A stretch of DNA of 64,000 nt from Selaginella moellendorffii (lineage: Eukaryota; Plantae; Lycopodiophyta). Made by a program: the position numbers and the translations under genes. Position 1 is the first letter of the stretch. Every line of letters begins with the position of its first letter. This document shows, in pieces, positions 4,546-64,000 of this stretch. The DNA lies in NCBI RefSeq assembly GCF_000143415.4, contig NW_003314294.1, positions 429,402 to 493,401 of the forward strand. Direction: 5' to 3'. The notes under the pieces are model-generated. The model searched no databases. It saw only the letters and a list, made by a program, of their open reading frames with translations, and was not told the origin of the DNA.

Positions 4546-4751
4546 AGAACTTGACAAGTGCTTATTAAATTAACAATACAATAATAATACTTAAAAATAT
4601 TATTAAAATATGTAAACAATAGCCAACTTTTTCATGTAAATATTTTGTGTACAAATATAATAAATGTTTTTTCTTGAAAAAAATGGTACTCATCTTTAAT
4701 AATTTATAATATTTAAAACTAATAATTAAAAATTTGAGAACAAACAAATGG

Positions 4752-4926
4752 TGTGAGGGCCAAGTGTACGGTTACGATGCCATATATTAATATTAGCGTA
4801 GTGGGATTTTGGTAGCTGTCGGATTGGTTTCAATTTGGACCACTCACTTCTGTATATAAGCTAGAGTTTTTGGGCTAATTGATATGCACATTTCTATATT
4901 CCCTTTCTATATTCCAAGCACTCACA
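4752..4926 (+). mobile_element. Solo LTR of the neighbouring Ty3/gypsy family
   Basis: TGTGAG...CTCACA inverted termini with a 4-bp ATGG duplication on both sides. Homologous to the repeats at 6283-6530 and 11641-11816; contains TATATAA. Confidence 0.8.
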
Positions 4927-4987
4927 ATGGCAAACTAAAAATTTATATAAATAGATATATAGTTTTTCTTATTTCTTATTTGTAATA

Positions 4988-5920
4988 ATGAGCTTTAAAA
5001 TTTTATTATTAGTAATTTTAATTTTTTCTTTTATTGCAAGCTATTATGCACAACCACCACAAACAAGAACGATTGGAGGTTTATACCATTTTGGTAATAG
5101 ACACATCAGTAGAATTATAAGTGAATTTAGAAATTTAATAGGAAGAATTAACATACCAATCAATCCTGGGCCAGATGGATATTTTATTCAAGAATCAGTA
5201 ACTGTTGCTTATCAACAAGTTATTATTCGAATTTATATATTTCGTGATGCTTTAAGGGGCTTTAATTGTAGATCACTTCCTGAAGGCTATGCATTTACTG
5301 CACGATATTTACAAGAAACATTTACTCAAATATTACGACTTGTAGAATATCATGCACGTCTTTATGGTTTACAAGAAATTATTACTGTTTATAGACACTT
5401 TATAATTGATTATTTTGCTAGTGGACCAAGAAGAAGAAATCCTAATGATCCAATGCCTTCTTTAGAATATCCAAAAGATTTACCTGATGATAATAATCCA
5501 CCTAGAGATATTTTAAATAGTGATTTTGATACTTCACAATGTTGGGCATATAGAACACAATTAATAAGTGGATATAAACATAGAATTAGTACATATATAA
5601 TTAATGGCAATGCTTTAGTATCATCAAATAATCATTATAGAGCAACTCTTATCAATTGTAATTTAATAATTGAAAGTATTCTTCATGAAAAAAGTATATG
5701 GTCTACAAATTCAAAAAAATTTGATGTTTCTTGTTCTTTACATCTTCAATATAGTGGTCGTTTACTTATAAATGATGATGATGATAATATTATATGGGAA
5801 AATGATAATTATTGTTTAGAATGCATACTTTTTGCTTTATTAACGCTTGAAGATAATGGAAAATTAGTTGTATCAAGTCATATTGGTAACTCAAAAAATA
5901 TAATTTGGAAAAATAATTAG
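4988..5920 (+). CDS. Secreted protein: signal peptide, unknown ~165-aa domain, C-terminal bulb-type (GNA/B-type) lectin domain; intronless
   Basis: 310-aa uninterrupted ORF in very AT-rich DNA with a hydrophobic N-terminus. The C-terminus shows the B-lectin repeats G.ALVSSN..Y..L.NCNL..WSTNS..C.L.LQ..G.L.I..IW..L.LEDNGKLVV..IW. Confidence 0.75.
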   Translation: MSFKILLLVILIFSFIASYYAQPPQTRTIGGLYHFGNRHISRIISEFRNLIGRINIPINPGPDGYFIQESVTVAYQQVIIRIYIFRDALRGFNCRSLPEGYAFTARYLQETFTQILRLVEYHARLYGLQEIITVYRHFIIDYFASGPRRRNPNDPMPSLEYPKDLPDDNNPPRDILNSDFDTSQCWAYRTQLISGYKHRISTYIINGNALVSSNNHYRATLINCNLIIESILHEKSIWSTNSKKFDVSCSLHLQYSGRLLINDDDDNIIWENDNYCLECILFALLTLEDNGKLVVSSHIGNSKNIIWKNN

Positions 5921-8650
5921 AAAATTCATTATAATATATAAAATATAGTAATTTATAAGATTAAAAACTTAATTTGCTCCATATTTCCCACAACAATGTG
6001 TGGCTTGTTATTCCTATTTAGTATTATTTATTAATGAAATTTACCAATGCAATGAAATAAATATATTTGTAATTTAAATACAAGATTAATCTTATTGCAT
6101 AAGATGGTATAATAAACTAGTATATACTAAAAAGTATTTCAGAAAGTTTATAATTTATAAATGTAAAATAAATCTAAATGAATAATAACTTTAGATGAAG
6201 TTTACATGACTCATGAAAAGAGGAAAAAAAAACTTAATAAAAGTTATAATATATATCAATTTAAATATGGCAAAATTTACATTGTGAGATCTAAGTGTAA
6301 AGCTATGATGTCATATACTATTATTAATATAATGGGATTTAAGTAGCTATTAAACTTGTTTCAATTCAGACCACTTGCTTTTGTATATAAACTAGGGTTT
6401 TCGGGCTTTGTCATGGTTTGAACATTATTATTGTCCAGATATCAATTCTTTCATTTCTTAGAGCATTTTTACTATAGAGAATCAAATATGCACATTTCTA
6501 TATTCTATTTGCATAATCCATACACTCATATTAGTAGCGATAAGGGGCAGCTTTGATTGTCCATGATAAGTGTTTTGATTTGTGCTTTTATTTTAAATTT
6601 AGCTTTTACATTGTCTAAATCTTTTTCTTTTCTTTAATAGCTTTTCAGTTTTTCTTTTTTCCCTTCATTTCATTCATCTTCATGGTAGAGTAGTAGCCTC
6701 CTCCTCTTCCTTTGACTCTAAAGTATCAACTGGTGTAATTACTTAATACTATGTGGTTACATATGACTAATCAAATTCATTTGATATTGGCATTCATAGT
6801 GTGTAGTGCACTCTTATTGACAACCCTTGCATCTAGTTGGAGTTTTTCTTTGGGAATCCTGGGAATAATGTGTATTATTAGTTCAATCATTTTACAGTGA
6901 TTGCTACTTATCATTCTTGGGATGATACTTGACATTCGTGCAAGTTCCTCATATATTTTTAAAAGATGGTGTTGCAATGGTACAATAGTTTAAACATAGA
7001 CACTCATATGAATTAGAGCTTTCTCTTAGATGTTTTTAAGCATGCATTTGGATATGTTGATGATTGTGATGATGTAATTCAACATTTGTATCATCTCTTT
7101 CAAAAGCCATCTAAGTCATTGATACAGTTTGGTATTTGCTTTCAAAACCTCTTGTTTCACATAGAGCTAAATATATTGGAGTAAATATATTATGGCTAGT
7201 ATTTCATTAAAATAATGTAAGCTTTATACATGCATTTGCTCCCACCACCCTTGATAACACTCTTTAACTGATATAATGTTATGAGATATCATCTTTTTCA
7301 CTTATTCCTACACATATTTCAACTCTACTTTCTGTGGGAGATCTTCTTCTAGTGAAGGTTGACACTATTGTTACCCGTATTCAAGAATAAGGGCAAGAAC
7401 GTGGTTATGGCTATGATGTTTGGTGATGGGTATATGATGAAGTTGGCCACATATATTGGCATTGTCCGTATTTTCTAGATTAATATCTTACCTTGACGTT
7501 AATAATGTCATATTGGTGCTATTGTAGTGGAAGGTCATGACATAGAGATTCTTCTAGGAAACAAGGAATTGCACAAGTAGTAGAGGGTTTTTACGTAACT
7601 AAGTTAGTGACTCTTTCATCCTTTTTTCGAGAGTACCATCTTCACTTAACACTAATTCATTTAGTGTTTACTTTTCAAGCTTATTCTTATAATAAGAGGT
7701 TTCTTATTGTTTTGTCTGTATTAGTTAATACAGGCTTGAGTTTATCTTTTATTATTTGGTTTATTGCCACATGTTGCCATTTACAATTGTGTCCTATAGC
7801 AAAGCCAGTCTTCATTCTTTATAACAATGGTCATACACATACAAATACGCATGATGAGGTGAACTTAATTGTGCATATGGGTGATTTCGAGCTTGAGTTT
7901 CAATTATTGTGAGTAGTGCCAAGTTAAGCTTTTAACGTCATCCTTAAATATAGATTAATTGCAATGTAATTATGCCAAATGTGACTTTGAGGCATCTCCT
8001 CTTTATCTCATTTTTATTCCATTCCTTTTATTTTTGTTCTAGTTCATCCTTATGCTTCTATCATTTTTGTCTCCTTATTATTTCCTATTATATTTTTATC
8101 TTGCTCCTCTTTTCCTTTATCATATCCTTTTGATGGCATTTATGTTGTAGCAATTGACCAGCTTAAGGAGTATACTAATCTCTTTGACTTATTATCTAGG
8201 GCTAAGATTGCAACATACTATCTTATTCTAACTAGGATGCTTGTCCAATTAAGGTTTTTATTCGTTGTTAGTCGCCAAAGGAAATCAAGATTTTATGTGC
8301 AAATATCAAGGAAACATTGGAGAAGTGTGTTATCCAAAAGTCTTGGAGTTTTTTAATATGTAAACTTCATCTTGTGACAAAATTTGATAGGGGTATTTGA
8401 TTGTGCATCAACTATTATCTATCAAATTAGATGATTATCCTAGATATGTACCCTCTTGCTCATAATATTGATCTACTAAATTATTTGGGGAAAAGTTGCT
8501 AGTTTACTAAGTAAATATTTTTTTTGGGTATTGACAAGTGTTGATAGCCGAAGAAGATGCATCATTTGGTTTATATGAGTTCTTAGTGATTGCATTCGAT
8601 TTGAACAATGCTCTAGTGACTTTTCAACAAATGATAGACAAAATTTTTTA

Positions 8651-8752
8651 CAATCTAGAAGTGAATGATGACTTCATCAATGATATGTTGGTCCCCTCCA
8701 ACAATCTAAAAGTGAATGATGACTTCATCAATGATATTTTGGTCCACTTGGA
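8651..8752 (+). repeat. 51-bp tandem duplication over the decayed RT catalytic-motif region
   Basis: CAATCTAGAAGTGAATGATGACTTCATCAATGATATGTTGGTCC occurs twice with few changes. Confidence 0.9.
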
Positions 8753-8863
8753 TGGGATGTAAGAGAAGCATGTTTGTGATGTTTTCAAGGTGTTGGATTA
8801 ATTGTAAGAAGTTAGTTTAAAGTTGAAGCCATCAAAGTACGTGTTTGGGTCTAAACACACAAC

Positions 8864-9441
8864 TGTAAGTTCCTGAATTTAAACTTCCCAGGAGGTCATC
8901 CAGCCAAGTACTATTCAAACCCAAAAACATTTAACTCTAAATATCCCAAAATCCTTAATTGATTGAAAAAGGGGGTGCACTCTTGTTCATGGGCCCTTTC
9001 CCTCTATATTTGAACCCCATGGACAATCTCTCGAGTCGTTATCTTTAGTTGCTTACAATCCACCATGCTTCCTTGCAAGTTCACGCCCTCATGAATGGGC
9101 GTGAGGAGCTGCAATTCTCTCGAGAGCCTCTTGACACACCCCTTGGGAGCAAATTGGACCAGCCAAATGTCAATCAACATATGGTGTGATTCCCTTAGTC
9201 AACATATGGTGTGATTCCCTTAGCCAACCAACAGAGTCGGACCTGAAACCCCTCTAATACCAAATGTAAATTCCAGAGTTTAGATTTCTTGGGAGGTCAC
9301 TCAGCCCAGTACTATTCAAACCCAAGGACGCTTAACCCCAAATATCCCAAGACTCTTAACCGATTGGAAAAGGGGGTGCACTCTTGTTCATGGGCCCTTT
9401 CCCTCTATATTTGAACCCCATGGATTATTTCTCGAGTCATT
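8864..9441 (-). mobile_element. Cassandra-like TRIM (non-autonomous LTR element with a 5S rRNA-derived core in its LTRs) nested in the gypsy RT
   Basis: LTR 8864-9057 (TGTAAG...CTTACA) and a second LTR 9265-~9441. A reverse-complement tRNA-Met PBS (CTCTAATACCA) sits at ~9252-9262. Each LTR carries ACTTCCCAGGAGGTCA..CCA..AGTACTA..CCCAA..CGCTTAAC, the reverse complement of the 5S internal promoter region. Confidence 0.85.
9174..9223. repeat. Perfect 25-bp tandem repeat in the TRIM internal region
   Basis: TCAACATATGGTGTGATTCCCTTAG x2. Confidence 0.9.
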
Positions 9442-12111
9442 CTCTATTTTGAGTACTATATTTTTTGTGAAGGTTTGCAAGTTAATCATAACAAACTTAT
9501 GGCTATTTTAAAGTTCTTTACTCCGAAGTGCGTGAATGATGTGCAACACTTCTTTGGCAAGGTGCAATATCTTAATTATTTTGTTGACCATTTTTTTTAA
9601 TTATACTACATTATTGCAAGTATTGCCAAAGTCATCAATATTGTTCTTAATTTAATTTGAGGATTGCAAGTGGGCATTTATAGATTTTAAAGAGTTGTTG
9701 GTGACTCTTCCAATTTTAGCATATCTTGATTACACTTAACCTTTTATTTTGTATGTGGATGCTTCGAATATCAAATATTGATCCTATATCAGTTATATAT
9801 TGCAACTAGTAGAAATGAACTACTTTATAATAGAGAAGTTAAAGTTTTAAGAAGCTTCATGTATATTTATATGGTTCTTGGATATTACTATAAGGTGACT
9901 ATGTTGCGATTACTTCATTATTGAAGTGGAAGAACTTAGTTAATTATATTGTTTAGTGAGCTCTAGAACTTAGTTAATTATATTATTTGGTGAGCTTTAA
10001 AGCCTTAAATATATAACTTTGAAGTTATTCATCATTTAGGGAGTTCTATAGTTGATGTTAATGCTCTTTTTGAAACTCTCCTCCCTTCTTCACTTTCTTC
10101 TTTTATTCCTAAGGAGCTTGTTATTTTAATATTAATAGATAAAGATTCCATATTATTGATAATTGTTATATTTGATGTTCATTATCCATAAAGTGTGGAG
10201 TAAGATTTACCTTTTTATGATGAGGTTTGTGAGGCTTAAAAAAGTTAAGCCATATATCTAAGCTTTGTGATGGGTTTATGAATCTTCATCACTTGTTGAT
10301 AACTTACCTTTTGATATTTACATTCTCAATATCATCTTAAGGATAACTTTTTTATTTTATGGTGACTAATCCTAATGATCATTTACAACTAGTGCTTTCT
10401 CCATGCCTATTATAATTTTTCTATTTTAAGTAGGTATATGACACATCATTGTATGACTAAGAAGTTACATAAGTATTTCTATTGGCTGGAGATGCAATGT
10501 GATATTATCTAGTATGTACATAGTTGCACTTGATGTCAAACTCATAATACTCCCCCTTGTGCTATAAAAAACAGTTGAAGTCAATTGCAATTTCTCATTT
10601 ATTTGAGTTGGTGGCATTTGATTTGATGGATTCTCTGGGATAATGGTTCTACATTTATGGCCATATTTTAATGTCTTGCCTAGGGATACACTACACTATC
10701 ATGAGTTCTTATCATTTATAAACAGATTTGGACCTTCAAAAGAATGATTATAAAGTATGTAAATTTCAATATTTGGATTGAGATGGTTATTTGTTATTTG
10801 TTTAGTATACATATATCATAGGGTTATGTTGATAATTCACTATATAAACTCTTATATAATCATAATATGATATTGCTAATGAAGTTCAATTTACCTTTGC
10901 AATCGCCACAAGCTACCAATGCTATAGTGCACCTAAATCTGGAGTTAAACTCTAAACCTGTTATACTATGAGAGGGTTTAGTACGCATTTCATATCCCTT
11001 ATACACATTAACTCCCTGTATCCAACTCTTGCATGCCAAATGGTGTCAGACTAGGAGTTCCTACCTTATGTTTATCCAATCTAAATACACATGCATTGAT
11101 CAATTCTCAATTATTTCAAGTGGGAATTATAAAAAGAACTAGCAGCATTGACCTCCTACCATCATAGTAGTAAAGAAAGTGTCCGTAAAGATTGGTTGAC
11201 AAGTAAATTTTGATACCTAAAATCATATTTGTGACAAATATTATATCATGGGATCACTATTTGACAAACATTCTTTCACTAGTTTGAGTGGAGTTTATTA
11301 AACACTTGGGCCATGTACAAGTGGGACAACAATGGTGCCACAACTCCTATTATCATCAATTTTTAAAGTATAAAGTGGATGACTTAGTGTAGTTTAATTT
11401 CCCAATCTTACAATATATGGTTTATTTAAGGGGTTCTTTACTCATTAGAAGGGACTATGTCAAATATTGCAGCAAGTTAGTCATAAGTTTACAAAGTTTA
11501 GTATGATTTTCAATAATCCAATCCTCAAGAAATTGTGTATATACAAAGGGATTAAGAACAATTGACACCACTTACAAATCCATTAGTGCTTCTTTTTAAT
11601 GTCTTTAATTACCTTCCATCATTTTGAGAGGAAGGGATGATATAAAGTTTAGGTGTACAGTTATAATATTATATATTATTATTAGTATTGTGGGATTTTA
11701 GTAGCCATTAGATTGGTTTTAATTTAAACCACTCACTCCCATATATAAATTATGGTTTTCAAGTTAATTAAATATGCATATTTTAATATTTTATTTCCAT
11801 ATTCCATCAATTTTAATGATATTTATTTGGTACTTATAGTTTAGATGTTTTACCATTATTTGTATATTCTTTATACTTTCAATAGTTTTTTAACCATATT
11901 ACGAGTCAATTTGGGAATAAAAGTATTTTTTTAAAAAAATATGTAGTAAGGTAGTCATGTTTAGATACTGTAAAATAAACATCTTTACTGCTAAGAAAAC
12001 AATTAAAAGATCCAGTTTGCAAGAAGAACACAAATAAGAATAAGGAAATCTGATTACAGTAATACTAAGTTTATAATAAAAAGAGAGGTTCACAAAGGGC
12101 ATGCCACCTAG

Positions 12112-39619: not shown

Positions 39620-42600
39620 CCATTTTAGAATATTCTCTTCTTAAAGAAGGGTTTATTTCTATAATTACAATAAATCAATGACATTTCTCAAGAATATAAT
39701 TAACAAGTAGATAGAAAGTTTTGAGCCATTTGAGCATCAACAACACTGATAAAAATAAATTATATTAAAAATAAAATAAATAATTTAAATTATTTTTAGA
39801 AAAATATTTTATTACACTTAGATAAATTTTAACATGTAATTATTTATTATATTACTATTCAGCTATCATTTCATACTACACTGTTTAAAATTTTATTTAC
39901 AATAAAAGGGTTTATAGTTTTTTAAATGTGACACTTTGATGTTATATATTACACACTTTTTTAAAAATTTGTACTTAGAGTATTCAAAACATAACTAACT
40001 TTATATTTTTTATAAATTAATAAAATATTAGAAATGATTGTAAAATCTTCACCTTTTTCTTATAGTATTATAACTCTCTATATACTAAGCTTATTTAGGT
40101 TTAATTAAATCTAATATTTACTAAAGCTTTTACTTCTTAATACACAGATTGAAATTTACACTGTTGCCACATCAGCTGCTCACCAATTTGTTGATAAAAT
40201 CTAATACTTTTAACTAATGCCACATATGCCAATCTCAACAAACTTTGCACAACAATTCCATGATGAACAGATGAGTGTTTTTGTAAGCTATAATCAATGT
40301 TGTTGTCTTCCAACCTCTTGACACAAAGTTTAACAAAATCTAAAGCAACATCTAACAACTTAAAAGGAGCATTCAAAGTACGTACTTCCAGGGGATAGTA
40401 TGCATAGAGACATAGTGCATCAACAACTAGCTCATGAAAGAAAATGCAAAACTCCACAATGAAATCCACACTCTCAAAGCAAAGTAGCTTATAGTAATGG
40501 AAGATGATAATAAAAGTGAGTATGACAAGGAGAACAATGATGATGAGGAGTTTCATTAGCAACTCAATAAGTTCAAGGTTAAACTCATAAGAACTCTAGT
40601 ACCAATAAAGCCAACTAACTAATGGAATAGTAGGAGCCTCGAGACAAAGCTTTATTTAGTTATAGGAGAATGAAACATAGCTAAACAACCATGCATTTAG
40701 GCATTTTTCTTATAGTTAGGATTATGACCTTGACACTCAAGGTTACAATCTTGATAATCAAGATTCAAAAAGAAATGACAATTACCACTATATAAGAATA
40801 GTTATGTGGGAGAGTTAACACTCAATCCCTACCCCTGTCTCTTTTGTACTTTAGCTTTCCATTATCAATGTACATCCACATGCTCAAAATTTAGAGTACT
40901 TAAGCAATGCCAAATTTATCCTTACTCACGATCTTGATAAAAACCTTTATAAGGATTGAAAGACTTGAATCACTTTTCTTTTTCACTTTCTGTATGTTTA
41001 TTTGTGTTTAGCTACAACAAAGCATAAGATTAAGTCAAGCAAGTGCAACATACAAGCAATTCACATAAAGTTTCCAAAAAAAAAATTAAAAGTACTACTA
41101 ACCACAAATGCTCATCAGGATTACTCCCCACAAAATAAAGAAGGTCATCTTCAAGGTAATATAAAAAATATACATTGTTAAAATAGTAAATAATTAGCAA
41201 ATGATGCAAAATTCTCAAACCCATCATAAAATATCTGAATCAACAACTCAACCTTTTGAGCCTTATAAACCTCGTTAACAGAAATGAAATAAAGAATAAA
41301 GATTAACTTTGTTGCACGATGTAATAATAAATGGCAACATATGGCAATTGGCTAAGAAATAGAGTCTAGAGAGAATAATAATTATTATAAAATGAACTTG
41401 AAAAGTAAATATTAGATGAATTGGTGCTGACTGAACCTTTCAATAATACTCTCAAAAGAAATATAGAAGGGTCATTATCTTATCTGCACAAAGACCTTCT
41501 ACTACTTATTTAACACTTGATTAAAGTTAAAAATTATTACATTCTTTTATACTCATTTCAATATATTCCATTTATCACCTATAGTAAATTATTTGTCACA
41601 TAGCTTTGGAAATAACACCTTTATAGGACAAAAATGTATAATAAGTAAAACAATTATATAAATTTACAATTTTAAAAAGCTTTTATTTTATAACAAAATT
41701 CTATGACATGCAAGAACATATAAAATTCTTATTTATAATTTTATACTGGCATCAATTCCATATATGAGGCTTTTATAATAATTTCAACATTATAGCACAA
41801 TCATATTGTAGCACACCTCTATTATTAAGTTATAACTCAAAAACATTTTATAAGGCAGGAGAAATTGTAAATTGCTAGCAAATAATTGTAGAAAAAATGG
41901 ATATATAAATTTACTTCATTCACAATGAATAGTTATGATAAGAGTTAGGTTAGGGTTAGGGCAACTATACAATATTTAGAATTTAAAATTTAAACTTAAA
42001 AACTAAGTAATAACAAAATTTAAATTTAACTATTTTAAAATAAAAAACATAATTAAAAACTAAGACAAATGCAATATAATATACTTAAAAAAATTATATT
42101 ATTAAAAAATAAAAATTATAAATAAGTCAAATTTAAATTTAAATTACTTAAATTTCATATGCAATAGGCTTAGCTATGGCCTTTTATAAATTATACAAAA
42201 AAAATGAGCTTAACACTGATTAGCCTGTTAAAAGAAAATTGCTTGCTATTACATTTTTTTAAAAAAAATATAATTTAAATCAAACTTTATAATTTAGTTA
42301 TTTATATGAAATATGACCTATTTTACATAAAATATTATTGATATTATTGTTTAACAATTATATTTATTATGATTATTAAAAAGGTAATCTATTTTAATAA
42401 TTATAAGTAATTTTTAATCTATATATCAGAAGGATAAAGAAATTAAATTTAGTTATATAATTATTTAATATTAAGTTTTTGGCTAGTTTTTTATATAATT
42501 TTAAAAAAATTTATTTAGGAGACAAAGCTAAATTGTATAAAATATTTTGGAATTATTTTAATGTAGTATTCGCAAATGGTATAATTTACAATGATATTTA

Positions 42601-43375
42601 AATTTTCTTAAGCAAATTAAAAATCTTAAATAAAAATTGTGGTTAATATCACAAGGTTTTATAAAAATATTTATTTTTTTTAAACACTTTTTAAATAATA
42701 AAATTTTATAGGTATATAATTTTACATTGCATGAAGTGATAGCATGTTATAATAATATAAACAATATAAAAATAAATTATTATTTTTATTTTTAAGTTTT
42801 TTTGGATTTTTTATTGTATGTACAATTAATATACCTACACCAATGTTTTAAACTATTTATAATAAATCTCAAATATCAAACTTTCCAACAATTTTTTACC
42901 TATTTATTTACCTTAACATAATAAAGCTTTTTTAACTATATTTTTATGTTATTTTTAATTATAAATAAATAAAAATATTTTATATACCATAAAATACTGA
43001 TATTTTTACTTTTATTTATTTTTATACCTAAATGTTTTTTACTGAATTTTTATTTTTATTTTTAAGTGATACATTAAAAGTAATAAAATAAGTGCTAAAT
43101 ATTCACTAGGTAAAGTAAAAGAAGATTAAAAAGAAAAAGTGCCATATTTAATTCTAGAAATATTTATTCTAATAAGTAGAACAAAATATTTATGTTTTTT
43201 TTATTATTTAAAGCAAGTAAAATTTTACTTTTCTTTCCAAAAAGAATAATATTTTTTTTATTAGATAAATGTTTTTTTTTCCCTTCTTCTATCTGTCATC
43301 ATTTTTTATTTCAAAGTTTTCTATCATTTGATAGATTCATTTTGTCTACTATATCTTTTTTCCTTGTCGATGGAA
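39620..43375. other. AT-rich island, probably decayed transposon sequence
   Basis: Abrupt compositional shift with no credible ORF; element family not recognisable. Confidence 0.5.
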
Positions 43376-43600
43376 TTTGACGAAGTACAGGTGTTGGTGA
43401 CCAAACAGCGTGTATGTTTATTCTATTGCTAACGTGGCGGAGTCCTATCCGCTAATACTTTGCATGGGTAAATCGACGGTCCAGATGCTATCTAGAACCG
43501 ACGGCATTGGCGAGGCGCTTGCATTGTCGAAGGTCATAGATTGGAGGGCTCGCTAGGAAGGAGGAGCTTGGGCGAAGGAGAGAGCTCCCGTTTCTTGGAT

Positions 43601-44962
43601 ATGGCAGCAGCGGCCATGGCTCAAAAGGTTTTGGTGCCTTGTTCTTCGTCTTCGTCTTGCGGGAAAGCCCAGTTCTCTCCAAGCCGAGGTAGGATCTTCT
43701 TTCGTTTTGGAAGGTTTTGGATCGAAAGCTTTTGCTACAGTTCACACCCATGCCATCGCATTTGGTGGAGAGTTGTCTCAGAGTTCTAGCAGGAAGAACA
43801 AGAGCCTAGCGCTAAAAGCTGTTGCGGTAAGTTCTATCTCCTCTCCATTTGCTTTCGTCGTCTCGGTCGAAATTGCTAAAGATTCTCAACGTTTCATGCT
43901 CGCAAAGGGTGAAACATCCGCTCCAGTTACTGCAAAGTCTGGGTGAGCTTCTTTCTTCCATAGTTCTAAAATCTTTTCTTTGCAAAGCTTGATCATATCT
44001 TTTGTTTCCCAGGCACGAGATCTTACTCTTCGATGCTCTCCGCGAAGGTCTCGAGGAGGAGATGGCGAGAGATCCCACCGTGTGCGTCATGGGAGAGGAC
44101 GTCGGCCACTACGGAGGCTCCTACAAAGTCACCAAGGGGCTGGCCGAGAAGTTTGGCGACTTGCGCGTGCTGGACACGCCGATTTGCGAGAACTCCTTCA
44201 CGGGAATGGGGATCGGCGCTGCCATGACGGGACTCCGGACAGTGGTAGAAGGCATGAACATGGGATTCTTGCTCCTGGCCTACAACCAGATCTCCAACAA
44301 CGCTGGAATGCTCCACTATACGTCGGGTGGTCAGTTTAAGATCCCGGTGGTGATCCGCGGCCCCGGTGGGGTTGGAAAGCAGCTTGGAGCCGAGCACTCG
44401 CAGCGTTTGGAGTCCTACTTCCAGTCAGTCCCGGGCTTGCAAATGGTGGCGTGCTCCACTCCATACAACGCGAAGGGACTGATGAAGGCCGCGATCCGGA
44501 GTGACAACCCGGTGATCCTCTACGAGCACGTCTTCTCTACATCTCAAGGAGAGNNNNNNNNNNNNNNNNNNNNNNNNNNNNNNNNNNNNNNNNNNNNNNN
44601 NNNNNNNNNNNNNNNNNNNNNNNNNNNNNNNNNNNNNNNNNNNNNNNNNNNNNGAGGGTATGATCCGGAGATCATCGACATCAGGTCGCTCAAGCCTTTT
44701 GATCTTCTTCACGATTGGGAACTCGATCAAGAAGACGCACAAGGTTCTCATCGTGGAGGAGTGCATGAGAACTGGCGGGATTGGAGCCAGCTTGAGAGCT
44801 GCGATTCTTGACAACTTCTGGGACTTCCTCGATGGCCGGCCCGAGTGTTTGTCGTCACAGGACGTCCCGACACCTTACGCTGCAACGCTGGAGGACGCGA
44901 CGGTGGTACAACCGGCGCAGATCATTGTGAAAGTGGAGCAAATGTTGCAAGGTCTCATCTAA
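43601..44962 (+). CDS. PDH-E1beta: Plastid pyruvate dehydrogenase E1 beta subunit (interrupted by an assembly gap)
   Basis: Transit peptide exons, [84 protein letters not shown]. Confidence 0.96.
44554..44653. other. Assembly gap (100 N)
   Basis: Run of N. Confidence 1.
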
Positions 44963-45899: not shown

Positions 45900-47890
45900 T
45901 GTGATCACCTCCCTTTATATAATTAGCTTTTTTTTGGTTTCCTCTAAATCTTTGTTACACTCTAGCATAGATTCTCCTACTATAACTCTTAAGGAATATT
46001 TTCACATCTCTATATCACACCTTAAACACTCAAAACACAACTTTAATTATTTCTATGGTTTGGATGGTATAATGACAAAATGGGAACTATGGCCCAAGGA
46101 GGAGAATTAGGAGGCTAGCCCAAAGAAGACATCACAACCACTACACTATAAGATTATTTAAAAATGTTATATGATCAAATAGACTACTAGAGATGTGTCT
46201 TTATATATTAAGGTGTACATAAAGTCTAAGTTAATAAAAATCAATGGATGCTCATAAATCCAAATTTATAATAGCTACAAAATCTTCACAGACAAGTGAC
46301 TCTTTAAAAGTAGAGCAAATATAAAAAAGGATGACCAAAACCAAGGCTGCCTCTTTCATATAAATAGTAAATATATTGTGAATATATATGTGACTGTTGG
46401 CCCTACCTTGACTTGGATTTGTTTCACATCAAATACATTCAAGTTCATAGAGGTCATATTGTAAGATTTAATCCTCAAGTTAGCTTTGGTTTCAATTTGA
46501 ACGAAACATTACTTCCTTGCTCAAATTGATCCTCTTTGGAAGCTTTATTAGCTCCTCTTATAATATGAAAAATAACATTTAGATGACCATAATGGAAATG
46601 TGATATAAGTTATATATCTCCTAAAAGGTAAATATGTACTTTATAGTAATAATATTTATTGTACAGAATATATAATTGTATGAGTTATTTTTACACCAAT
46701 TTTTTGTTTACTTAAGAAAAACCTGTAGGTGGACTTGGATGGTAGTGGAAATACCTTATAATTTATAAACTTTCCTAAACACTTCCTAGTATATTCTTTT
46801 TTATTTTACCATGTAATGGTTAATATGCAATAATATTAATATTGATTTATAAATTATAAACATGTTTATAATTATTGATCAATTGGATTATTCAAAAATA
46901 CTAAATAAGAATGACACTACTATTAAGTAAACAGGTTGCTGCATGCAATGTGAAGCAAATTTTTTCCTTTCTAATGTTGATTTCTTAATATTAGTGTATC
47001 TATTATTTATTAATACAATTGATTAAATGGAATTAAACCTGTTTGTAATTTATAAACACAAAATTAGTCTTCAATTATTAGATAATAAATTTAATTACAA
47101 TGTGAGTGCTCAAGATATAGGAATAGATATATTAATTAGGGTTTAGATCCCTACTTATATACAAGAAAGGATGGACTAAATTCAATCCCAAATGGATATT
47201 ATAGTATTATAATTAATATATTATCTAGCCAAGTAATACATGTATATACATGTATATATTTACAAATTTTATACCATCTTTCCTTCCAAAAAATGAAAAA
47301 GGTGATGGCAATAAGTCAGGTGAAACATCTGGAGCATTTGCTAGGCAACTATAAACTATTACAAGAATTTGAAACTTTTACAAAATCATTAATAAAGTTG
47401 TTAACAACCATAACTAAAACAAAACCCAAAGTCATGATATAAGCATTAATCTACTATAAAATCCCGATAAAATAATTAATTTGATGAGGAAATCTTTACA
47501 TATTTATTCCAAGGATATATAAATTTATCCCATATTGGGTAAAATCATTAGCTAAAAAGACAACTTCTAAATTAAAATAATTATGCAAAATTAATGCACA
47601 AACACAATGAGTACATATTCCACCCACTAACAGGATATAAAAGACCCTAAATCAAACTCTAGAGCATGCAATATTAATTTAGACACATAAACTACCTTAG
47701 ATTGCCAAAGAAAACAAAAAAGAGCATTCCACTATGCTTGAATTCTTGTTTTGAAAATTTTATTGATGTGTTATTATCCGCATGTTATGTTTTGAGCATA
47801 TTTTTAATTCCATCATTGTAAGTATTTTTTTTTTTTCACCATCATATACTGCTAGCTCAACTTCAAATTCTCTTACAAATAATACGTGGG
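45900..47890. other. AT-rich island, probably decayed transposon sequence
   Basis: Compositional shift, no credible ORF. Confidence 0.45.
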
Positions 47891-47932
47891 TTTTTAGGTC
47901 AAGAAGAAAGAAAATCGTTTGAGGATTTTTCT

Positions 47933-49116
47933 ATGGCAAGTAGCAGTGCTCTATCGGCAGCAGCGACGCTCACAAAATCCGCCAATTCCTTCGCCTCCAG
48001 CAGCAGCTCCAGCTCCGCCTCCGCCCCCTCCAGGAAATCCGGGAGCTTCAAATGCGGTACGCGATTCTTCGCCTCCATTCCCTTCACCAAAACATTGACA
48101 GATTTTGGGTCGCAGGGATGAGAATCCGGGCCGAGAGCGACGGCAGCAAAGGATCTACGACAAAATCTCCCCCACCGGTGGAATTGGAGCGCTCCCCGGC
48201 CGATAAGCTCGTGGATGGAATGTCGTTCGGCCAGCTGTGCGATGAATTTCAGTGCATAAGCAGCCCCTCCGTGGAATCTACGTGCCGTCAGCTCGCGAGA
48301 GATATCCTGGAAATTCGAGATGGGAATAGAGCTCTGGGAACTCTGGCCTACTTTGTCAAATACAAGGTAAGCTCTTCCTTCTTTTTCTTTACACGACTAG
48401 TTAGATCTCTTCTCTCTTTTCTAGGATCCATTGAGGTCTTTCCAAGGACGATTGAAGTACAATAGGCCGTCGTGGACGAGAACTGCCTTGGAGAATCCAA
48501 CAGTGGTACGTACGTGATTGGTTTCTTTGCTTGCGAGCTTTTCATATTCATGCAGTGGTGCTTTGGCGGTGGTTCCATTTGCCTCCTCAGGCAGTGCGTC
48601 AAATGGAGATGGTGTCGACGAGCGTGCTACGAATCCAGTGGACGATACAAGGAAGGCCAAAACTTGCTGCTGCTTCCTTCGTTGGCGATGTTCTTGTCAA
48701 CGTAACGTCGACTTTCACTCTCAACCAGATCAGTGGCCAGGTTCTGGAGCACCGAGAGGAGTGGGACCTCTCCGGCAACTCTCCTCTGGCTCAGGCATAC
48801 TTTTGGCTCTCCAGGATTGCGTACTCCACAGTCGAAGCTGGCAAGGATACGTCGGAGTTAGTCCAAGGGGTATCCAAGGTTATTGACAAGAACTTGGGCG
48901 ATGACAGCAGCATTTACGTCGATCCAACCGATCCAAAGAAGGTCTGGTTGTTTCTCTTTTCTCATAGAAATAGTTTATATCGATCTTCACGACTTGGCAA
49001 ATTGCCGTTTGCAGTTCTTCCAAGTGGATGATAATCGCCAAAAGGACATTTACCAAGTTGGCCTGGTGCTTGCGCTGCTCTACCTCCTTGTCCAGTTCTT
49101 AAAACTCACGCTTTGA
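47933..49116 (+). CDS. Conserved chloroplast protein, DUF2358/NTF2-like with C-terminal TM, 5 exons
   Basis: Ser-rich transit peptide; DKLVDGMSFGQLCDEFQCISSPSVESTCRQLARDILEIR, YKDPLRSFQG..Y, FTLNQISGQVLEHREEWDLS, FFQVDD..LALLYLLVQFLKLTL. Confidence 0.85.
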
Positions 49117-49888: not shown

Positions 49889-50410
49889 TAGAAGTAATTT
49901 GGCTTTTTTGGTAGAACACCAGCAAAAACATTGTGAGAGCTCTGATATAATAGTTTATAAAAAGGGGTAGAAGTTTTAAGGCTTTGCCATTTCATTATAC
50001 TTAGTGGGAGATAAAAAATGGTCGTTTCATACTTGCCAACAGTTATGTATGCTAAAAATTGGCAATGACTGGAAAATATTCATAAGGTATTCTCCCTCTT
50101 ATGCATGGATCAATGATTATTTGAAAGATGAAGTGAAGGATGTTACTTTATAATGTGGCCAGCAACAAGTTCAACATGATAATAAATATTATTTGATCCA
50201 ACCTTTCCTGCTTAGCTGTATGTTTAAATAAAGTTCAGAGGTGTGTTTTAAGTCAGTAGTAATGCTGACATTTGTGTAAGATGCGGTGCTTTTTACCTCC
50301 TAGATTATAGCAGTTAAAAGCACTGAAGGGTTTATAAAAAAGCAATAAGAAGATTCGTACCAAGTGTGAATATGTCACATGAGTATAGACAAACTTTTAA
50401 TTTCTATCTG

Positions 50411-50458
50411 AACATGAATTCTGACTTAGAGGCGTTCAATCATAATCCCACACATGGT
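50411..50458 (-). pseudogene. Short 25S/26S rRNA fragment
   Basis: ATTCTGACTTAGAGGCGTTCAATCATAATCC is the reverse complement of the conserved LSU 3'-domain sequence GGATTATGACTGAACGCCTCTAAGTCAGAAT with one mismatch. Confidence 0.85.
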
Positions 50459-52189
50459 GCATATACTAAACATGACCCAAGATTTTCATTAACATGAATG
50501 GTATATCTTAAGGAATAGAGCTCTGAGGTGGCCATTGCTGGCTTGTCTTGTAGAGCATTGTAAGATAGTTTCCACATCTATACGATTGAAGAGGCCTAAA
50601 AAATGTAGTGACAATTTTGTATCAAATTTAAGAATTAAACTACATAATCTTTTTTGCACCAGTTATTCCAAATGCTTAGGTATGTTAAGCTAGACAGCAG
50701 CTTTCTTGACAAGCTCTTGCTCAAGAGGAGCCATCTAAAGAGGATTCACACTTCAAATTCTTTTTCAATCTCTTTAGGCAATTCTTCCATTGCACTAGCA
50801 GACAGAGCAAATCTTAACTGTCTTAACCTCTTGGCATCACAATCATGCAAGAATTGCCTTCAACATTGTATACCACCTTGATATTATAGGCAAATAGACC
50901 TTTAAAGTCTCCATTGATATTATGATAATTTGTTGCACTATCTATTATGAGTCACGACCTAATATAGATGAATGGAATACATATCTTGACCTCTATGCCC
51001 TCAATTGCTATGTTAGTATAATTACCTTCTAAAATCTTGATGGATATTTTATTTATTGCTATAAATTTGAGCATATTTAAAGAAGCATTGGTTGGAAGTA
51101 ATGCTTGTCAAAAGAAATTTGCACTCACAATTGAGTTTGAAGCATTTGTGTTCTATATGAACCATGGATGAGAATTCTAATCTCAAATGAATGTTCAAAG
51201 TTAATTATCTTGAAAATAAAAGCATTTAAAGTTCATTTAATTAGGAATAGATTATGTAAAAAAATCCATGACAAATCTTATATCTATTCCTATGATCATA
51301 TTTTTTCTTGCTGCCACTTATAATTTTGAATATAAAATACATGTAGAAATGAATTTCTAGATGATTACATACTATAGTGGTTAAAAAAGTGGTAGAAATT
51401 AATTAAAAATTTTAAAAATTTCATTATGTAAATCAACTATTTTTTGTAGCACCTACTACTTGCAAGGCATTTTCTCTATCCCTTGAAAGTTCATTCATTT
51501 TGTGCCTTTGAGCTTTGAAAACCCTTGCAACTAACCTGGCCTCCTCCATCGTAGTACAGGAATATTCGGCTGTTGGTAAGAAATTAAAATTCTGCAACTA
51601 ATTTTAAATCTTAAGAGCACACTTCACTCTCCTCTACACACTGGAAATATTAAAATAGCACAGCAGCAGTTCTCAATGTTATTGAGGTACCACATTTGAG
51701 GTATCTCATGAAGGTTAAGGTCCACAATTGATACAATACAATGAATTGTTTTAGTATCAATTGGTTGACAATTGATTTGGAATGTTTATATTCTCAAACA
51801 ACAAAATGAATTTTCTTTTGGATTCAAATTTCTTGAAATTGTTCTCTAAGACAACTTATTCATTAAGGGAAGAGAAAAGCTGGATGCCAGGAATATTCTC
51901 TTCCCCAGAATGGCATTGCATGAGACTACAGCCCTAATAATACATCACTGGTATATTTAATAGATCTCGTATACCACAATCACACCATTACAACAAGACA
52001 AACTTTCAAAACAAGATGAGCCCTGCAGTGAAGGGGGAGAAAGTGTGAATGAAAGATAGCTATATTAGAATTTTGTTATGTATTTTGCTAGCTAGCAGAT
52101 TAGATATTGCCATAGCAGTTGTCAATGTTAGATTAGAAGAAACACAGGTTTGCAACTTGTAGTACATATTGGTTTATGGTAAAAGGTTA

Positions 52190-59408: not shown

Positions 59409-60897
59409 TTAACAGGTTGGCATGACAACTTCTAGCCTTCGTCTGTTTCTGTCGAACTGTGCTCTCGCATTCTTGAAATCCACAGGGTGTGCCGTTTGTA
59501 CCTGCGTGCTAAACTCTCATCTTATTCAAAGCCAACATGAACACGAAAAGCTTACCTTGAGCTTATACTTTTCAGGGACGTACAAAGAGACATCGGAATT
59601 CGTCACCTCCAGCTCCACCTCGCTCGAAGTTTGCTGGAGACCAACGATACATGGTAAAGCTTATCAATGCTGAATAAAGAGATGCTTACCACTTCTGGCA
59701 AGTCAACTCGCAACACAATCATCTTCGGTTTTTGATTGCCATTTGGTAGAACAGCCTTATCTGTCCTGAAAAAACGCACATTTTTTTCTCTGAAAGCATT
59801 GTAAGTACCTTCGGAATAGCAGCCAGGAGTTACAAACATACCAGAATTTCCCAAGGTCCAAATCATCTCGGTAGATGAATTCGTAAGAAGGCTTCACTTC
59901 TTTGGAGGCAAGTTCCTTCACGTCTGGCACTGAATCACTTGAAGGTTTCTCTCCTGCTCTTGACTTGGAAGAAACCTCTTTTTCTGTGTTTGCTTGCTCA
60001 CTTGCCGATGTCTTGCGAACTGTTTGCATCTTAGGATTTCCAGAATGTCCTTTATACTTCAGCTTGGGCAGGATAAATTCTGGGAATGGAGGTTAGAATA
60101 AGAAAGAATATAGAAACACTTATCTGGTCTACCTTCACTAAGCTCTACGCCCCGTTGTTTTTGAATGTTCTCAATTGCTGTCTCTGCTAGAAACCGCTTA
60201 AACCGATTGTTTTTCATGGCACGCTCATGAGCTTCTTCGTTCACTACAAAATCATAAACCTCACACTCCCCGCCGGCTGAGAGAAAACATACGCTTCAAC
60301 AACAAAGGAGAAAAGAAAATTCGAGCAAGCAAACCTTTATCCACGTCGTTTCGTGCAGGACCCAAGCTGTAAGGGATCGACCACTGTTCGCCTTTTCCAG
60401 AATGAGTGAAAGAAGTCGGTTTGTCAATGTTGGTTGTATGGCATATGTTGATGAAAACCTGAGAAGGAAAACTATAGCGACCAACAAAAGAAAGGAAAAG
60501 AAGAAACGCAACCTTCTTATTGTTCTTCTTGTTCTTCGTTTTGACACAAAATCCAGCAACCGGTATGATCAAGTCCTTTCCTTCCATTGAAAAACTGCTG
60601 CGCTCTTCGGCCATTTTGAGGTATGCCTCAGCTTCCTGGCAAACACAGCCATTTTCTCTAAGCTGCAAGAAAAAGAAAATCCATGTCAACTTACTTCCTT
60701 GCTGCCAGGCTGCGAGATCTCCTTCGCATACTCGCTCAAGAGCTCCATAAACTTGGGATCTTTCATACATGTCTTCAGCCTCGAGAATTCCTGTAGAGAA
60801 ATCAAAGCCACAGTGATTTCCAGCCCAGGGCCTTGCTCGATCGGCGAAGACTAACATCGGAGCTGAGATTCATGTCGCGTAGCACTTGCTCCGCCAT
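59409..60897 (-). CDS. DNAAF2: Kintoun/PF13 (DNAAF2) axonemal dynein assembly factor, PIH1 + CS domains, multi-exon
   Basis: N-terminal LSSDEFSRLKTCMKDPKFMELLSEYAKEISQP, P.AGFCVKT, VFINIC, WSIPYSLGPARNDVDK, VYDFVV, PSYEFIYR..DL, IVLRVDLP, ARAQFD..RLEVVMP. Confidence 0.8.
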
Positions 60898-60990
60898 GCC
60901 CACGAGCCCTAAATCCCAGTTAGGGCAGACAAAAGATCTCAGCCGTCGACATTGGCGCGAAAGATTTAAACATTTAAAAAAACAAAAGAT

Positions 60991-61491
60991 TTAATATGGA
61001 TAATCCGAGACGCCAAGCATGGCACTGAGCGTGAGATAGACGAGATAGAGCCCGCCCACGATCACAATCACCGCTAAAACTCCAGTCACTGGATTGCTGA
61101 GAAGATCAAAGATGGGCTTGAAGATGGAATAGAGCCCTCCAGTCGCCACCGTCAAGAAATAGATCCCATATCTCCTCATGTTATCCCAGAATTCCTCCAG
61201 CAATGGCCCCTCCGGCCCCATCGCCAAATCTCCCAAATTTCTCCCATCTGTGGAGCCGTGAAGATCGATCGCTGCGTGCGCGGCGTCTGGATGCGTGTGG
61301 GAAAGAACACCATAGCCAATTCCAAGCGCTGCTGCTAGATACAGCGCTGTGGGCTTGAAGATCTCCTTTTGCGCTGGAATTTCTGGCCGTGAGCTTGATT
61401 TGATAGAACCCAATGAACGCGATTTGATTCTTTTCGCTCGCAACGCTGGAATTTGAGCGCAAAATGGAGATATTGATAGAGAAAACGCCAT
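60991..61491 (-). CDS. Ycf33 (DUF751) family chloroplast membrane protein, intronless
   Basis: Transit peptide then MGPEGPLLEEFWDNMRRYGIYFLTVATGGLY..KPI..LL.NPVT..LTLSAMLG. Confidence 0.9.
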   Translation of the reverse strand: MAFSLSISPFCAQIPALRAKRIKSRSLGSIKSSSRPEIPAQKEIFKPTALYLAAALGIGYGVLSHTHPDAAHAAIDLHGSTDGRNLGDLAMGPEGPLLEEFWDNMRRYGIYFLTVATGGLYSIFKPIFDLLSNPVTGVLAVIVIVGGLYLVYLTLSAMLGVSDYPY

Positions 61492-61541
61492 AGTAGCCAC
61501 TAAGAACCCTACAATGCGTATGAAGAGCTCTGTTTTAGGGT

Positions 61542-61940
61542 TTATGAGAAGTAGCCATAGCCATCGTCGTCTTCCGTGAGCACACTCAGATTGAGTACCT
61601 GCTTCTCGCCGATCCACATCGCATGCGCCGTGTGATCTCGCAGAGGGTTTCCAGTGTTGGGATGGATCAACACCGAGAAATTCCGCCGGTTGAGAGGGAT
61701 CCAGGTCACAAACTCCACGAAATCTTCGTGCTTCATGAGATTTACCTCGAAATTCCCAATTCCATGAGGGCCAATTGGCTTGTCCCACACCTTGATCTTG
61801 AATTGGGGGAATTTGCCGCGTATCTCGTCCTGGAGCTCCCTGGCCTGGCGCAGCTGGGCCTGATCCGTCTGGAAGAAATAGACGTGGACGTCGTAGGATC
61901 GAACACGGAAAGGGAAATTCGGTGTCTTTGCCATGATCAT
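61542..61940 (-). CDS. DOPA 4,5-dioxygenase-family protein (fungal/bacterial DodA type, not plant LigB type), intronless
   Basis: YDVHVYF, WDKPIGPH, FEVNL, W..LNR..FSVLIHPNTG..RDH..HAMWIGE..LNLSVL; start at ATG 61940 or 61934. Confidence 0.88.
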   Translation of the reverse strand: MIMAKTPNFPFRVRSYDVHVYFFQTDQAQLRQARELQDEIRGKFPQFKIKVWDKPIGPHGIGNFEVNLMKHEDFVEFVTWIPLNRRNFSVLIHPNTGNPLRDHTAHAMWIGEKQVLNLSVLTEDDDGYGYFS

Positions 61941-61977
61941 CAAACCCTAGCGAAGAACAGGGAGCTCCTTTGCTCTT

Positions 61978-63086
61978 ATGGCTCTTGTCCACGCCTTGAA
62001 TTCGCGGTTCCTGGCGCCCAATCGAAGAATCGAGCGCCACCCATTTGCATTCGCGCCTAGAATCCTTGGAAATTCGCCTCGCCGGGTATTAGCCCTCTGC
62101 GATCGATGCCTAGCTCACCACTGTGGTTTTTCTTTGGGCAGGCGAACAAGGATCGCGTCGCATGCCCTCGATCTTCCGCAGAGGAGACGAAGCCCAAGAC
62201 AGTGTTCGTCGCCGGCGCGAATGGCAAAACCGGGAAGCGCATCGTGAGCAAGCTGCTAGCGGATGGATTCAAGGTCCGCGCCGGTGTCCTGGATGTTGCC
62301 AAGGCTCGGTCCAATCTACCCAGCAGCCCCAACATCGAAATTGTGTGAGATCTTCATCCATTTCTTTCTTCCACTCCATTTCTCCGCCATAGCCAAAGCT
62401 CGCCTCGTTTGTTCTTCCTTGTCTCAGATCCCGGCTGACGTGACCCAAGGGACAAATCCACTGGCAACTTCGATTGGAGACGCGGATGCGGTGATTTGCG
62501 CTACTGGATTTCGCTACTCTCTCGATGTCCTGGCTCCCTGGAAGGTAGATTCTTTCCGGATCTCGACTCGATCGATCATACATTCTTTCTCCTCAGGTGG
62601 ACTATCGAGGAACCCTAAACCTCGTGGAAGCGTGCCGCAAGAATGGGATCAAGAGATTCGTGCTCATAAGCTCCATTCTCGTGAATGGCGCCGCGTGGGG
62701 GCAGGCGCTCAATCCAGCCTATCTGGTGCTCAATGCGTTTGGTCTCACGCTCATCGCCAAGCTCCAGGCCGAGAACTATGTGAGAAGCTCTGGGATCAAC
62801 TACACGATCATCCGGCCTGGGGGCCTCTCGGAGGAGAAACCGGATGGAAACAAGAAGATCGTCATGGCAAAGCAGGCAAGGCATTTCTCTCCTTTGATTC
62901 TTTGAGAAATTGACGATTTGATCGCAGGATACGCTCTCGTCCGGATCGATTTCGCGAGATCTTGTCGCTGACGTTGCTGTGGAGTCGATCGATTGCGACG
63001 ATGCGAGCTTCAAAGTAGTGGAAATCGTGGCGGAGCCTGGCGCCCAAAAACAGAGCATCGCAGAGCTCTTTGCCCTAATTTCATAA
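61978..63086 (+). CDS. Chloroplast NAD(P)-binding Rossmann-fold protein (atypical SDR, TIC62/flavin-reductase-like), 5 exons
   Basis: VFVAGANGKTGKRIV, DAVICATGF, VDYRGTLNLVEAC, LISSILVNGAAWGQALNPAY, AKLQAENY..YTIIRPGGL, GSISRDLVA. Confidence 0.93.
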
Positions 63087-63144
63087 TCCTGGTGGGCCGG
63101 CCGAAGAAATCTAGGGCGCGGCATCTTGATATTGTCTCTAAGCG

Positions 63145-64000
63145 ATGAGCGCCGATCTAGTGTCCAAGCTGCGCGCGGCGCTTCTCCACCACCAGGTTCG
63201 TCTCGATCCAGTGCCGCAGCGCCAGCACGTCGAGGATCCCAACGATCCCACGCTCGCTTACATTTCCCGGATGCTTCTGGACGAGGAGGAGGAGGAGGAG
63301 GAGGAGCCGCCGCAGATGATCCAGCTCCAGGATCCCTACAAGAATCTCATCGCGGAGCTCGCCGCTCTGGTGTCTTCGCCCGGCGGCAGTGGGAATCTCA
63401 TCCATCCAGACGATTGTGGAAATATTTCGGTGCCAGACGTCCACGAATCCAGGACGGGGTTCCTGAAATCGATGCTCCTGGAAGCGGCTCGAGCGGTGGC
63501 GGGGAATCGTGGCTCCGAGGTCTACAGGATCATCAGCGAGGTGAGGAGCCTGGCATCGCCAGGGGGCAGCAGTGAAGAACGCACGGCCTTGTTCTTCGCG
63601 GATGCCTTGATTGCGCGCTTCACAGGGTTTGGGCCACAGGTATACAGTGCCATGGTGAAGGGGATCCGAGAGAGGCACTCTGTCCACGTCCGGCTGCTCA
63701 ATCTCCCATCCTTCAGGGTCACCCAGCGATTTGCCAACGGCACCATTCTAGACTTTTGCCAAGGAGCTACGAGAATTCACATCGTCGACTATGGGATCCA
63801 CTATGGCTGCCAGTGGCCCCAGCTCATCCAGAGGCTCTCGCAGCGACCAGAGGGACCGCCGGCGATGAAGATCACAGGGATCGACTTTCCTCGCGTGGAC
63901 GTCAAGGAGACAGAGAGAAACCTCGTGGAGTATGCCAAGAGCTGTGGAATCTCGCTCGAGTTTGAGGTGATCACGAGCACGTCCTGGGAATTGGTCCAGC
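63145..64000 (+). CDS. GRAS transcription factor, LISCL/SCL14-like, runs off the window end
   Basis: LAYISRMLLDE N-terminal motif, ASPGG..ERTALFFADALIAR, FANGTI..IHIVDYGIHYGCQWPQLIQRLSQRPEGPPAMKITGIDFP. Confidence 0.93.
   Translation, partial: MSADLVSKLRAALLHHQVRLDPVPQRQHVEDPNDPTLAYISRMLLDEEEEEEEEPPQMIQLQDPYKNLIAELAALVSSPGGSGNLIHPDDCGNISVPDVHESRTGFLKSMLLEAARAVAGNRGSEVYRIISEVRSLASPGGSSEERTALFFADALIARFTGFGPQVYSAMVKGIRERHSVHVRLLNLPSFRVTQRFANGTILDFCQGATRIHIVDYGIHYGCQWPQLIQRLSQRPEGPPAMKITGIDFPRVDVKETERNLVEYAKSCGISLEFEVITSTSWELVQ

Follow-up and report, generated by a model that had tools for sequence, protein, structure and literature searches.

Selaginella moellendorffii carries an intact, transcribed and conserved nuclear gene for a DodA-type dioxygenase, here called DODA, near the end of the window (the whole stretch of 64,000 nucleotides that was analysed). 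Together with its orthologs in other land plants it forms a clade of new members of the already known PF08883 enzyme family. The explanation that we favour with good overall confidence is that of an old and functional plant DodA gene that probably encodes a catechol-cleaving enzyme, may have come to plants by an ancient transfer from fungi and does not belong to an operon.

Structure of the DODA gene

61542..61940, minus strand: DodA-type (PF08883) dioxygenase CDS (ORF list, Pfam, PDB matches, AF2/Foldseek, RNA contigs, ATG contexts)

In the program-made ORF list, the reading frame comprises 133 codons at 61542-61943 of the minus strand and is intact and intronless. The stop codon is located at 61542-61544 and ATG codons are found at 61940 and 61934; depending on the start, the product has 130-132 amino acids. 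The second ATG (61934) carries an A at position -3 and a G at position +4. The NCBI model of the allelic copy begins at this second ATG, giving a protein of 130 aa and a CDS of 393 nt. Residue numbers given below refer to a query of 131 aa (window:61545-61937:-).

Family, fold and conserved site

The DODA protein matches the Pfam family PF08883 (DOPA_dioxygen) with an E-value of 7.8e-37 and 126.2 bits (cut-off 25), far more than chance would give. The match runs from position 1 to position 105 of a profile with 106 positions. This was the sole Pfam family matched at E<=0.01, and no LigB domain was matched at this threshold. A search of NCBIfam gave no match and was uninformative. Among proteins of known structure, 2peb (5e-17) and 2nyh (1e-15) were found by sequence, 2NYH/2P8I being matched as well. 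An AlphaFold2 model of the protein reached a pLDDT of 91.9 and a pTM of 0.85. In a Foldseek search with this model, the best four chains belonged to 2nyh, 2peb and 2p8i, with E-values of 1e-11 to 5e-11, a TMt of 0.85-0.87 and, in three of the four, an rmsd of 1.2-1.4 A. The ESM Atlas model agrees with the family fold (TM 0.83-0.87 to a PF08883 cluster); the feature search of the Atlas returned bacterial PF08883 clusters only and added no taxonomic information.

The motifs that characterize the family are all present, namely H18-V-Y20, G56-P57-H58, I91-H92-P93 and D101-H102. In an alignment of 40 sequences from plants, fungi and bacteria, P57, H58, H92, P93, H102, W108 and G110 are invariant, while H18, Y20 and D101 are conserved in at least 90% of the sequences. 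Judged by sequence and predicted structure, the protein is a member of the DodA/PF08883 family with its fold and its conserved histidine site. The first-pass annotation, which was made from the sequence alone, had recognized a DodA-type dioxygenase with intact HVY, GPH, IHP and DH motifs, and had considered it unrelated to the LigB-type DODA of angiosperms. The Pfam, PDB and Foldseek results bear out this assignment.

Predicted function and comparison with known enzymes

AmDODA (dodA) of Amanita muscaria, the founding member of PF08883, shares the Pfam family and the conserved histidine residues with the Selaginella protein, but has 185 aa and four introns (PMC9097196), whereas the Selaginella gene lacks introns and its product of 130 aa consists almost only of the domain. 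The bacterial proteins GdDODA (Gluconacetobacter diazotrophicus), AcDODA (Anabaena cylindrica), 2NYH/2P8I (Paraburkholderia xenovorans) and 2PEB (Nostoc punctiforme) are of the same size class (115-125 aa); bacterial PF08883 proteins share the fold of the Selaginella model at an identity of 31-32%. AmDODA, GdDODA and AcDODA are homologs of 2P8I and 2PEB, possess a His-His-His site and convert L-DOPA in a metal-dependent manner (PMC9097196). AmDODA opens the ring of L-DOPA at both the 4,5 and the 2,3 positions, and GdDODA and AcDODA make betalamic acid from L-DOPA (PMC9097196). The betalain DODA of angiosperms (LigB/class III extradiol dioxygenase, for example BvDODA of Beta vulgaris) performs the same 4,5-extradiol reaction on L-DOPA as the characterised DodA-type enzymes, but is unrelated to the Selaginella protein in fold and family. 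AmDODA and the betalain DODAs of plants have no common origin (PMC9097196).

With metal-ligand roles taken from PMC9097196, the metal would be held by the conserved histidines H58, H92 and H102, with H18 and D101 nearby, and the enzyme would cleave a catechol ring in an extradiol manner, the likely substrate being L-DOPA or a catechol close to it. Three distant DodA members act on L-DOPA, and none of the conserved residues is missing from the Selaginella protein; by analogy, it would most likely open L-DOPA or a similar catechol by metal-dependent extradiol cleavage. To our knowledge, most PF08883 proteins are uncharacterised, also with regard to their natural substrate, and we know of no DOPA-derived pigment from these seed-free plants.

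In the AlphaFold2 model, the domain begins with its first strand after only about 10 residues. A targeting extension would not fit into so short a stretch; the protein is therefore presumed to be cytosolic, and a plastid or secretory signal appears unlikely. Liverwort gene models (187, 223 and 293 aa) carry 50-90 additional N-terminal residues that are absent in Selaginella, as in Marchantia Mp2g09460 (L003:6001-6564), Riccia P0156 and P0279. These residues could be a targeting peptide or the result of a mis-called start.

Genomic setting and transcription

The neighbourhood of DODA is densely packed:

61492..61541, minus strand: spacer of 50 nt from the DODA stop to the Ycf33 ATG (ORF coordinates; crossed by a contig of run X2)
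60991..61491, minus strand: Ycf33 (DUF751) CDS of 166 aa, the next gene downstream (Pfam PF05421, E 2.5e-21)
61978..63086, plus strand: NmrA-like NAD(P)-binding gene with five exons (RNA joints; translation matches the gene in the second assembly described below)

A protein 98% identical to DODA is encoded in the S. moellendorffii assembly GCA_000143415.2, where it is annotated as 'uncharacterized 21.2 kDa protein'. The gene order on that scaffold (L001) is GRAS, NmrA-like, DODA, DUF751 (Ycf33), PIH1, Tab2-like and PsaK. An identity of 96.9% over 6 kb between the window and this scaffold fits two haplotypes of the same genome. Within the DODA CDS, the haplotypes differ in five synonymous and two nonsynonymous codons, a pattern that, with such small counts, is compatible with purifying selection; the spacer and the Ycf33 ATG differ at three positions. 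Because bona fide plant genes flank DODA in two independent haplotype sequences, contamination is excluded. The embedding between plant genes, from which contamination had been judged unlikely at first pass, is thus found twice.

Evidence for transcription was obtained from Logan contigs of four runs from four studies. These data are unstranded, and the strand of the DODA transcript was inferred. The contigs skip the introns of the plus-strand NmrA-like gene as well as the CT..AC introns of the minus-strand PIH1 gene, showing that they are assemblies of RNA. The contigs cover the whole DODA ORF, and no joint was observed inside 61448-62084. DODA is therefore intronless, as the ORF had suggested.

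The exons of the NmrA-like gene are located at 61978-62084, 62141-62342, 62428-62542, 62595-62871 and 62924-63086. Three of its joints read GT..AG; for the fourth (62871>62924), whose position has 5 nt of slack, GC..TC is printed. After splicing, the frame stays open as far as the stop, and its translation agrees with the gene called in L001. Exon 1 encodes a basic N-terminus rich in Ser, Arg and Ala that resembles a transit peptide. The GT..AG intron at 62085-62140 removes the ATG at 62106, which mechanical ORF calling would choose.

Several further observations concern the surroundings of these genes. By analogy with L001, PIH1 starts about 95 nt past the Ycf33 stop, and no contig covers 60249-60892, the first part of PIH1, in any of the four runs. 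Contigs over Ycf33 stop 7-39 nt beyond its stop codon (window 60896-60993). At the start of the GRAS gene, a GAG/GGA triplet repeat (63272-63321) encodes an in-frame Glu-rich run, and upstream of this gene, insertions of 5-6 nt at 63099 and 63140 occur in one RNA run. Elsewhere in the window, blocks of 26-34% GC (4001-12000, 40001-44000, 46001-48000 and 50001-52000) alternate with genic DNA of 45-57% GC; the former are presumably islands of repeats or transposons that separate gene clusters.

DODA and Ycf33 as probable separate transcription units

The two minus-strand reading frames are only 50 nt apart, and the first-pass annotation had suggested that DODA might be expressed as the first cistron of the Ycf33 mRNA. 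A contig of run X2 (60952-61905) indeed covers Ycf33, the spacer and the greater part of DODA. In the remaining three runs, contigs over Ycf33 (60952/60958/60984-61365) end at a break at 61366-61447, the only interruption of the coverage. Seven haplotype SNPs within these 82 nt, in the part encoding the N-terminus of Ycf33, split the three runs into two alleles of roughly equal depth (e.g. 42.5 of 96.7). Since the break coincides with these SNPs, it looks like an assembly bubble rather than a transcript end, and both haplotypes appear to be expressed.

Continuous coverage would allow a single mRNA with two translated cistrons, but contigs over two genes show neither single molecules nor the strand. 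The contig that holds DODA runs on into the NmrA-like gene, through the first intron of the latter. A distance of only 37-43 nt separates the ATG of the NmrA-like gene (61978) from that of DODA on the opposite strand, so that the divergent transcripts must overlap head to head at their 5' ends and are merged by an unstranded assembler. On an mRNA starting before DODA, eight AUGs would precede that of Ycf33, among them the AUG at 61934 with its A at -3 and G at +4, which makes leaky scanning to Ycf33 unlikely. Reinitiation after an ORF of 130 codons is inefficient in eukaryotes and also counts against translation of a second cistron. In addition, the Ycf33 contig is 2-3 times deeper than the DODA contig in two of the four runs, although this is a weak measure.

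The order DODA-Ycf33 is also not a general feature of plant DODA loci. In tblastn searches, Ycf33 was found next to DODA in L001 only, and not beside the orthologs in the five relatives checked, i.e. Marchantia, Adiantum, Diphasiastrum, the plant-like metagenome contig L002 and the transcript contigs L005/L006. Likewise, no NmrA-like neighbour was found beside the orthologs in Marchantia, Adiantum, Diphasiastrum and L005/L006. The ORF that follows the DODA homolog on L002 was tested as a candidate and is not Ycf33. Our data fit overlapping monocistronic transcripts in a very compact array better than a bicistron: the spacings of about 40 nt and 50 nt would reflect closely packed transcription units and not an operon. 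A working DODA-Ycf33 bicistron, from which both proteins are made, is unlikely, and the proposal of a shared mRNA is correspondingly weakened in spite of the continuous coverage.

Orthologs in seed-free land plants

A word search with the single protein returned three relatives only. The near-uniqueness suggested by this result was wrong, as exhaustive searches of representatives and with a plant profile revealed relatives. Among 1.84 billion representatives, 1074 relatives were found at E<=0.001. The best three (53-56% identity, E about 1e-34) belong to Adiantum, a fern, and to the liverworts Riccia and Marchantia; the plants are followed in rank by chytrids, Zoopagomycota, Blastocladiomycota and ascomycetes. 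Searching with the plant sequences as a profile brought in Ceratopteris, Diphasiastrum complanatum (60% identity), Calypogeia fissa, Riccia sorocarpa and, from a EukProt transcriptome, the hornwort Nothoceros aenigmaticus, together with about 12 unlabelled transcript or metagenome sequences, before scores fall to Mucoromycota (Bifiguratus, Umbelopsis). Altogether, plant orthologs show 53-60% identity to the Selaginella protein. No moss, seed plant or alga was observed among the named matches within the best 120-150 of more than 1000, most of which are unnamed. Judging from these matches, seed plants and mosses seem to lack the gene.

The unlabelled sequences from Logan, ENA and JGI (P0008 and P0280-P0294) fall, with the exception of P0008, within lycophyte, fern or leafy-liverwort subclades. 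P0008 and several other unlabelled sequences of eukaryote type may come from algae. The contig L002 (JGI metagenome 3300047537, 4977 nt) carries an intronless plant-type PPR gene of 883 aa followed by a DODA ortholog. As this ortholog nests in the lycophyte subclade and has a plant-type PPR gene beside it, L002 is best read as plant DNA in an environmental sample, probably from a lycophyte. An Ephedra EST labelled DOPA_dioxygen + U-box + RING was set aside, because it looks like a weak multi-domain annotation.

The orthologs of Marchantia, Calypogeia and Diphasiastrum are without intron as well. In Adiantum, one GT..AG intron of about 740 nt, which opens with a long GA-dinucleotide repeat, follows the residues HPNTG (L004:8346-9081), and the Ceratopteris ortholog is interrupted in the same region by about 980 nt of extra sequence (L010:3001-4385). 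An intron common to ferns and Mucoromycota was considered and rejected: that of Bifiguratus is located inside the GPH motif, so the fern intron probably arose within the plant lineage. In the literature, including work on horizontal gene transfer, we found no mention of the PF08883 family in seed-free plants; this statement does not extend to the genes listed by Ma et al. 2022 and by Richards et al. 2009.

Phylogeny and origin

To place these sequences, a tree of 77 sequences and 135 columns was calculated with IQ-TREE (LG+C20+F+G4 PMSF) and rooted on bacteria. Eukaryotic DodA sequences are set apart from the bacterial ones by a branch with support of 97/97. Within this clade, all plant sequences, from liverworts, a hornwort, lycophytes and ferns, form one clade (94/88). 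One of its subgroups (100/94) unites Selaginella, Diphasiastrum and four unlabelled sequences. The sampled Basidiomycota belong to a separate Dikarya clade; AmDODA itself is not in the tree. The deep order inside the plant clade is poorly resolved. In AU tests, neither the union of the liverworts (p-AU 0.275) nor that of the vascular plants (p-AU 0.243) was rejected, and the data are in this respect compatible with vertical descent in land plants that follows the species tree. Because the plant orthologs form one clade, any acquisition would predate the divergence of the living land-plant lineages. That DODA was present in their last common ancestor and has been vertically inherited since is a safe conclusion from the sequence comparisons.

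These results also bear on the idea that Selaginella alone took up the gene recently, from a fungus or a bacterium. Such an event would suit a gene without introns whose family consists mainly of fungal and bacterial members, and the mere three relatives yielded by the word search pointed the same way. However, the plant orthologs are closer to the Selaginella sequence than any fungal sequence and share one clade with it, and the gene is found in both haplotypes. Its GC3 of 0.69 is close to that of its divergent NmrA-like neighbour (0.65; Ycf33 0.53). Contamination as the source of the other plant sequences is opposed by the fern intron and by the scaffolds of the orthologs in liverworts, a clubmoss and ferns, which are chromosome-scale (33-178 Mb). 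We consider a transfer into Selaginella alone extremely improbable.

Fungal relatives show 40-47% identity to the Selaginella protein compared to 31-39% for bacteria, which agrees with the resemblance to fungal members that had been noticed at first pass. The sister group of the plant clade consists of Mucoromycota and the yeast Geotrichum (81/80), inside a clade of fungi and Balamuthia. With Mucoromycota-like fungi as nearest relatives, the family may have reached the plant lineage by transfer before land plants diversified. A comparable ancient transfer from fungi to plants has been described for fungal fruit-body lectins in Marchantia (PMC11906373), which show the same pattern as DODA, occurring widely among fungi as well as in bryophytes and further seed-free plants. 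On the other hand, a tree in which all named fungi are held together apart from the plants is not rejected (p-AU 0.28). The fungal origin depends on one node (81/80) in an alignment of 135 columns.

Purely vertical descent from an early eukaryote would instead require that plants kept the gene via their algal ancestors, as did fungi and Amoebozoa, and that it was lost many times independently elsewhere. The presence of the family in land plants, Balamuthia (Amoebozoa) and every major phylum of fungi, the AU result for the fungi and the unlabelled eukaryote-type sequences, which could be algal or protist, are in line with such a history. It predicts, though, that algal orthologs should outrank fungal ones in the plant-profile search, and among the best matches listed there was no named green, red or other alga, nor a seed plant or moss. 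The best tree, moreover, places the plants inside the fungal radiation. We regard descent without any transfer as rather unlikely. An ancient transfer from a fungus explains the distribution most economically; it is plausible but unproven, and we judge it about as likely as not. Of the horizontal acquisition that the first-pass annotation had proposed, at most an event no later than the origin of land plants could stand, while a recent one specific to Selaginella does not agree with the plant clade. As to the vertical clade of homologs from green algae and bryophytes, which by that annotation's own account would speak against an acquisition, bryophyte, lycophyte and fern orthologs do form one, with no green-algal homolog among the named matches.

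Significance

In the papers considered here (such as PMC9097196), DodA-type DOPA dioxygenases are described from fungi and bacteria, and the only DODAs described from plants are of the unrelated LigB type. Our analysis adds a conserved DodA clade that is found in every major lineage of seed-free land plants except, apparently, the mosses. Plant DodA proteins are already contained in public annotations, where they are named only hypothetical or uncharacterised. Since the clade includes the transformable model Marchantia (Mp2g09460), questions of both the catechol chemistry and a transfer at the time of land colonisation are directly testable.

The most far-reaching version of this history is a tentative one that we would not expect to hold in full. 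It states that a Mucoromycota-like donor passed the gene to the ancestor of land plants, that it was kept under selection for more than 400 million years in liverworts, hornworts, lycophytes and ferns and lost in seed plants and mosses, and that the plant enzymes have retained the cleavage of L-DOPA, giving betalamic acid or compounds of the muscaflavin type. If this were true, seed-free plants would hold a second route to betalamic or muscaflavin-type chemistry, independent of the LigB route of the Caryophyllales, and possibly an undiscovered class of catechol-derived metabolites.
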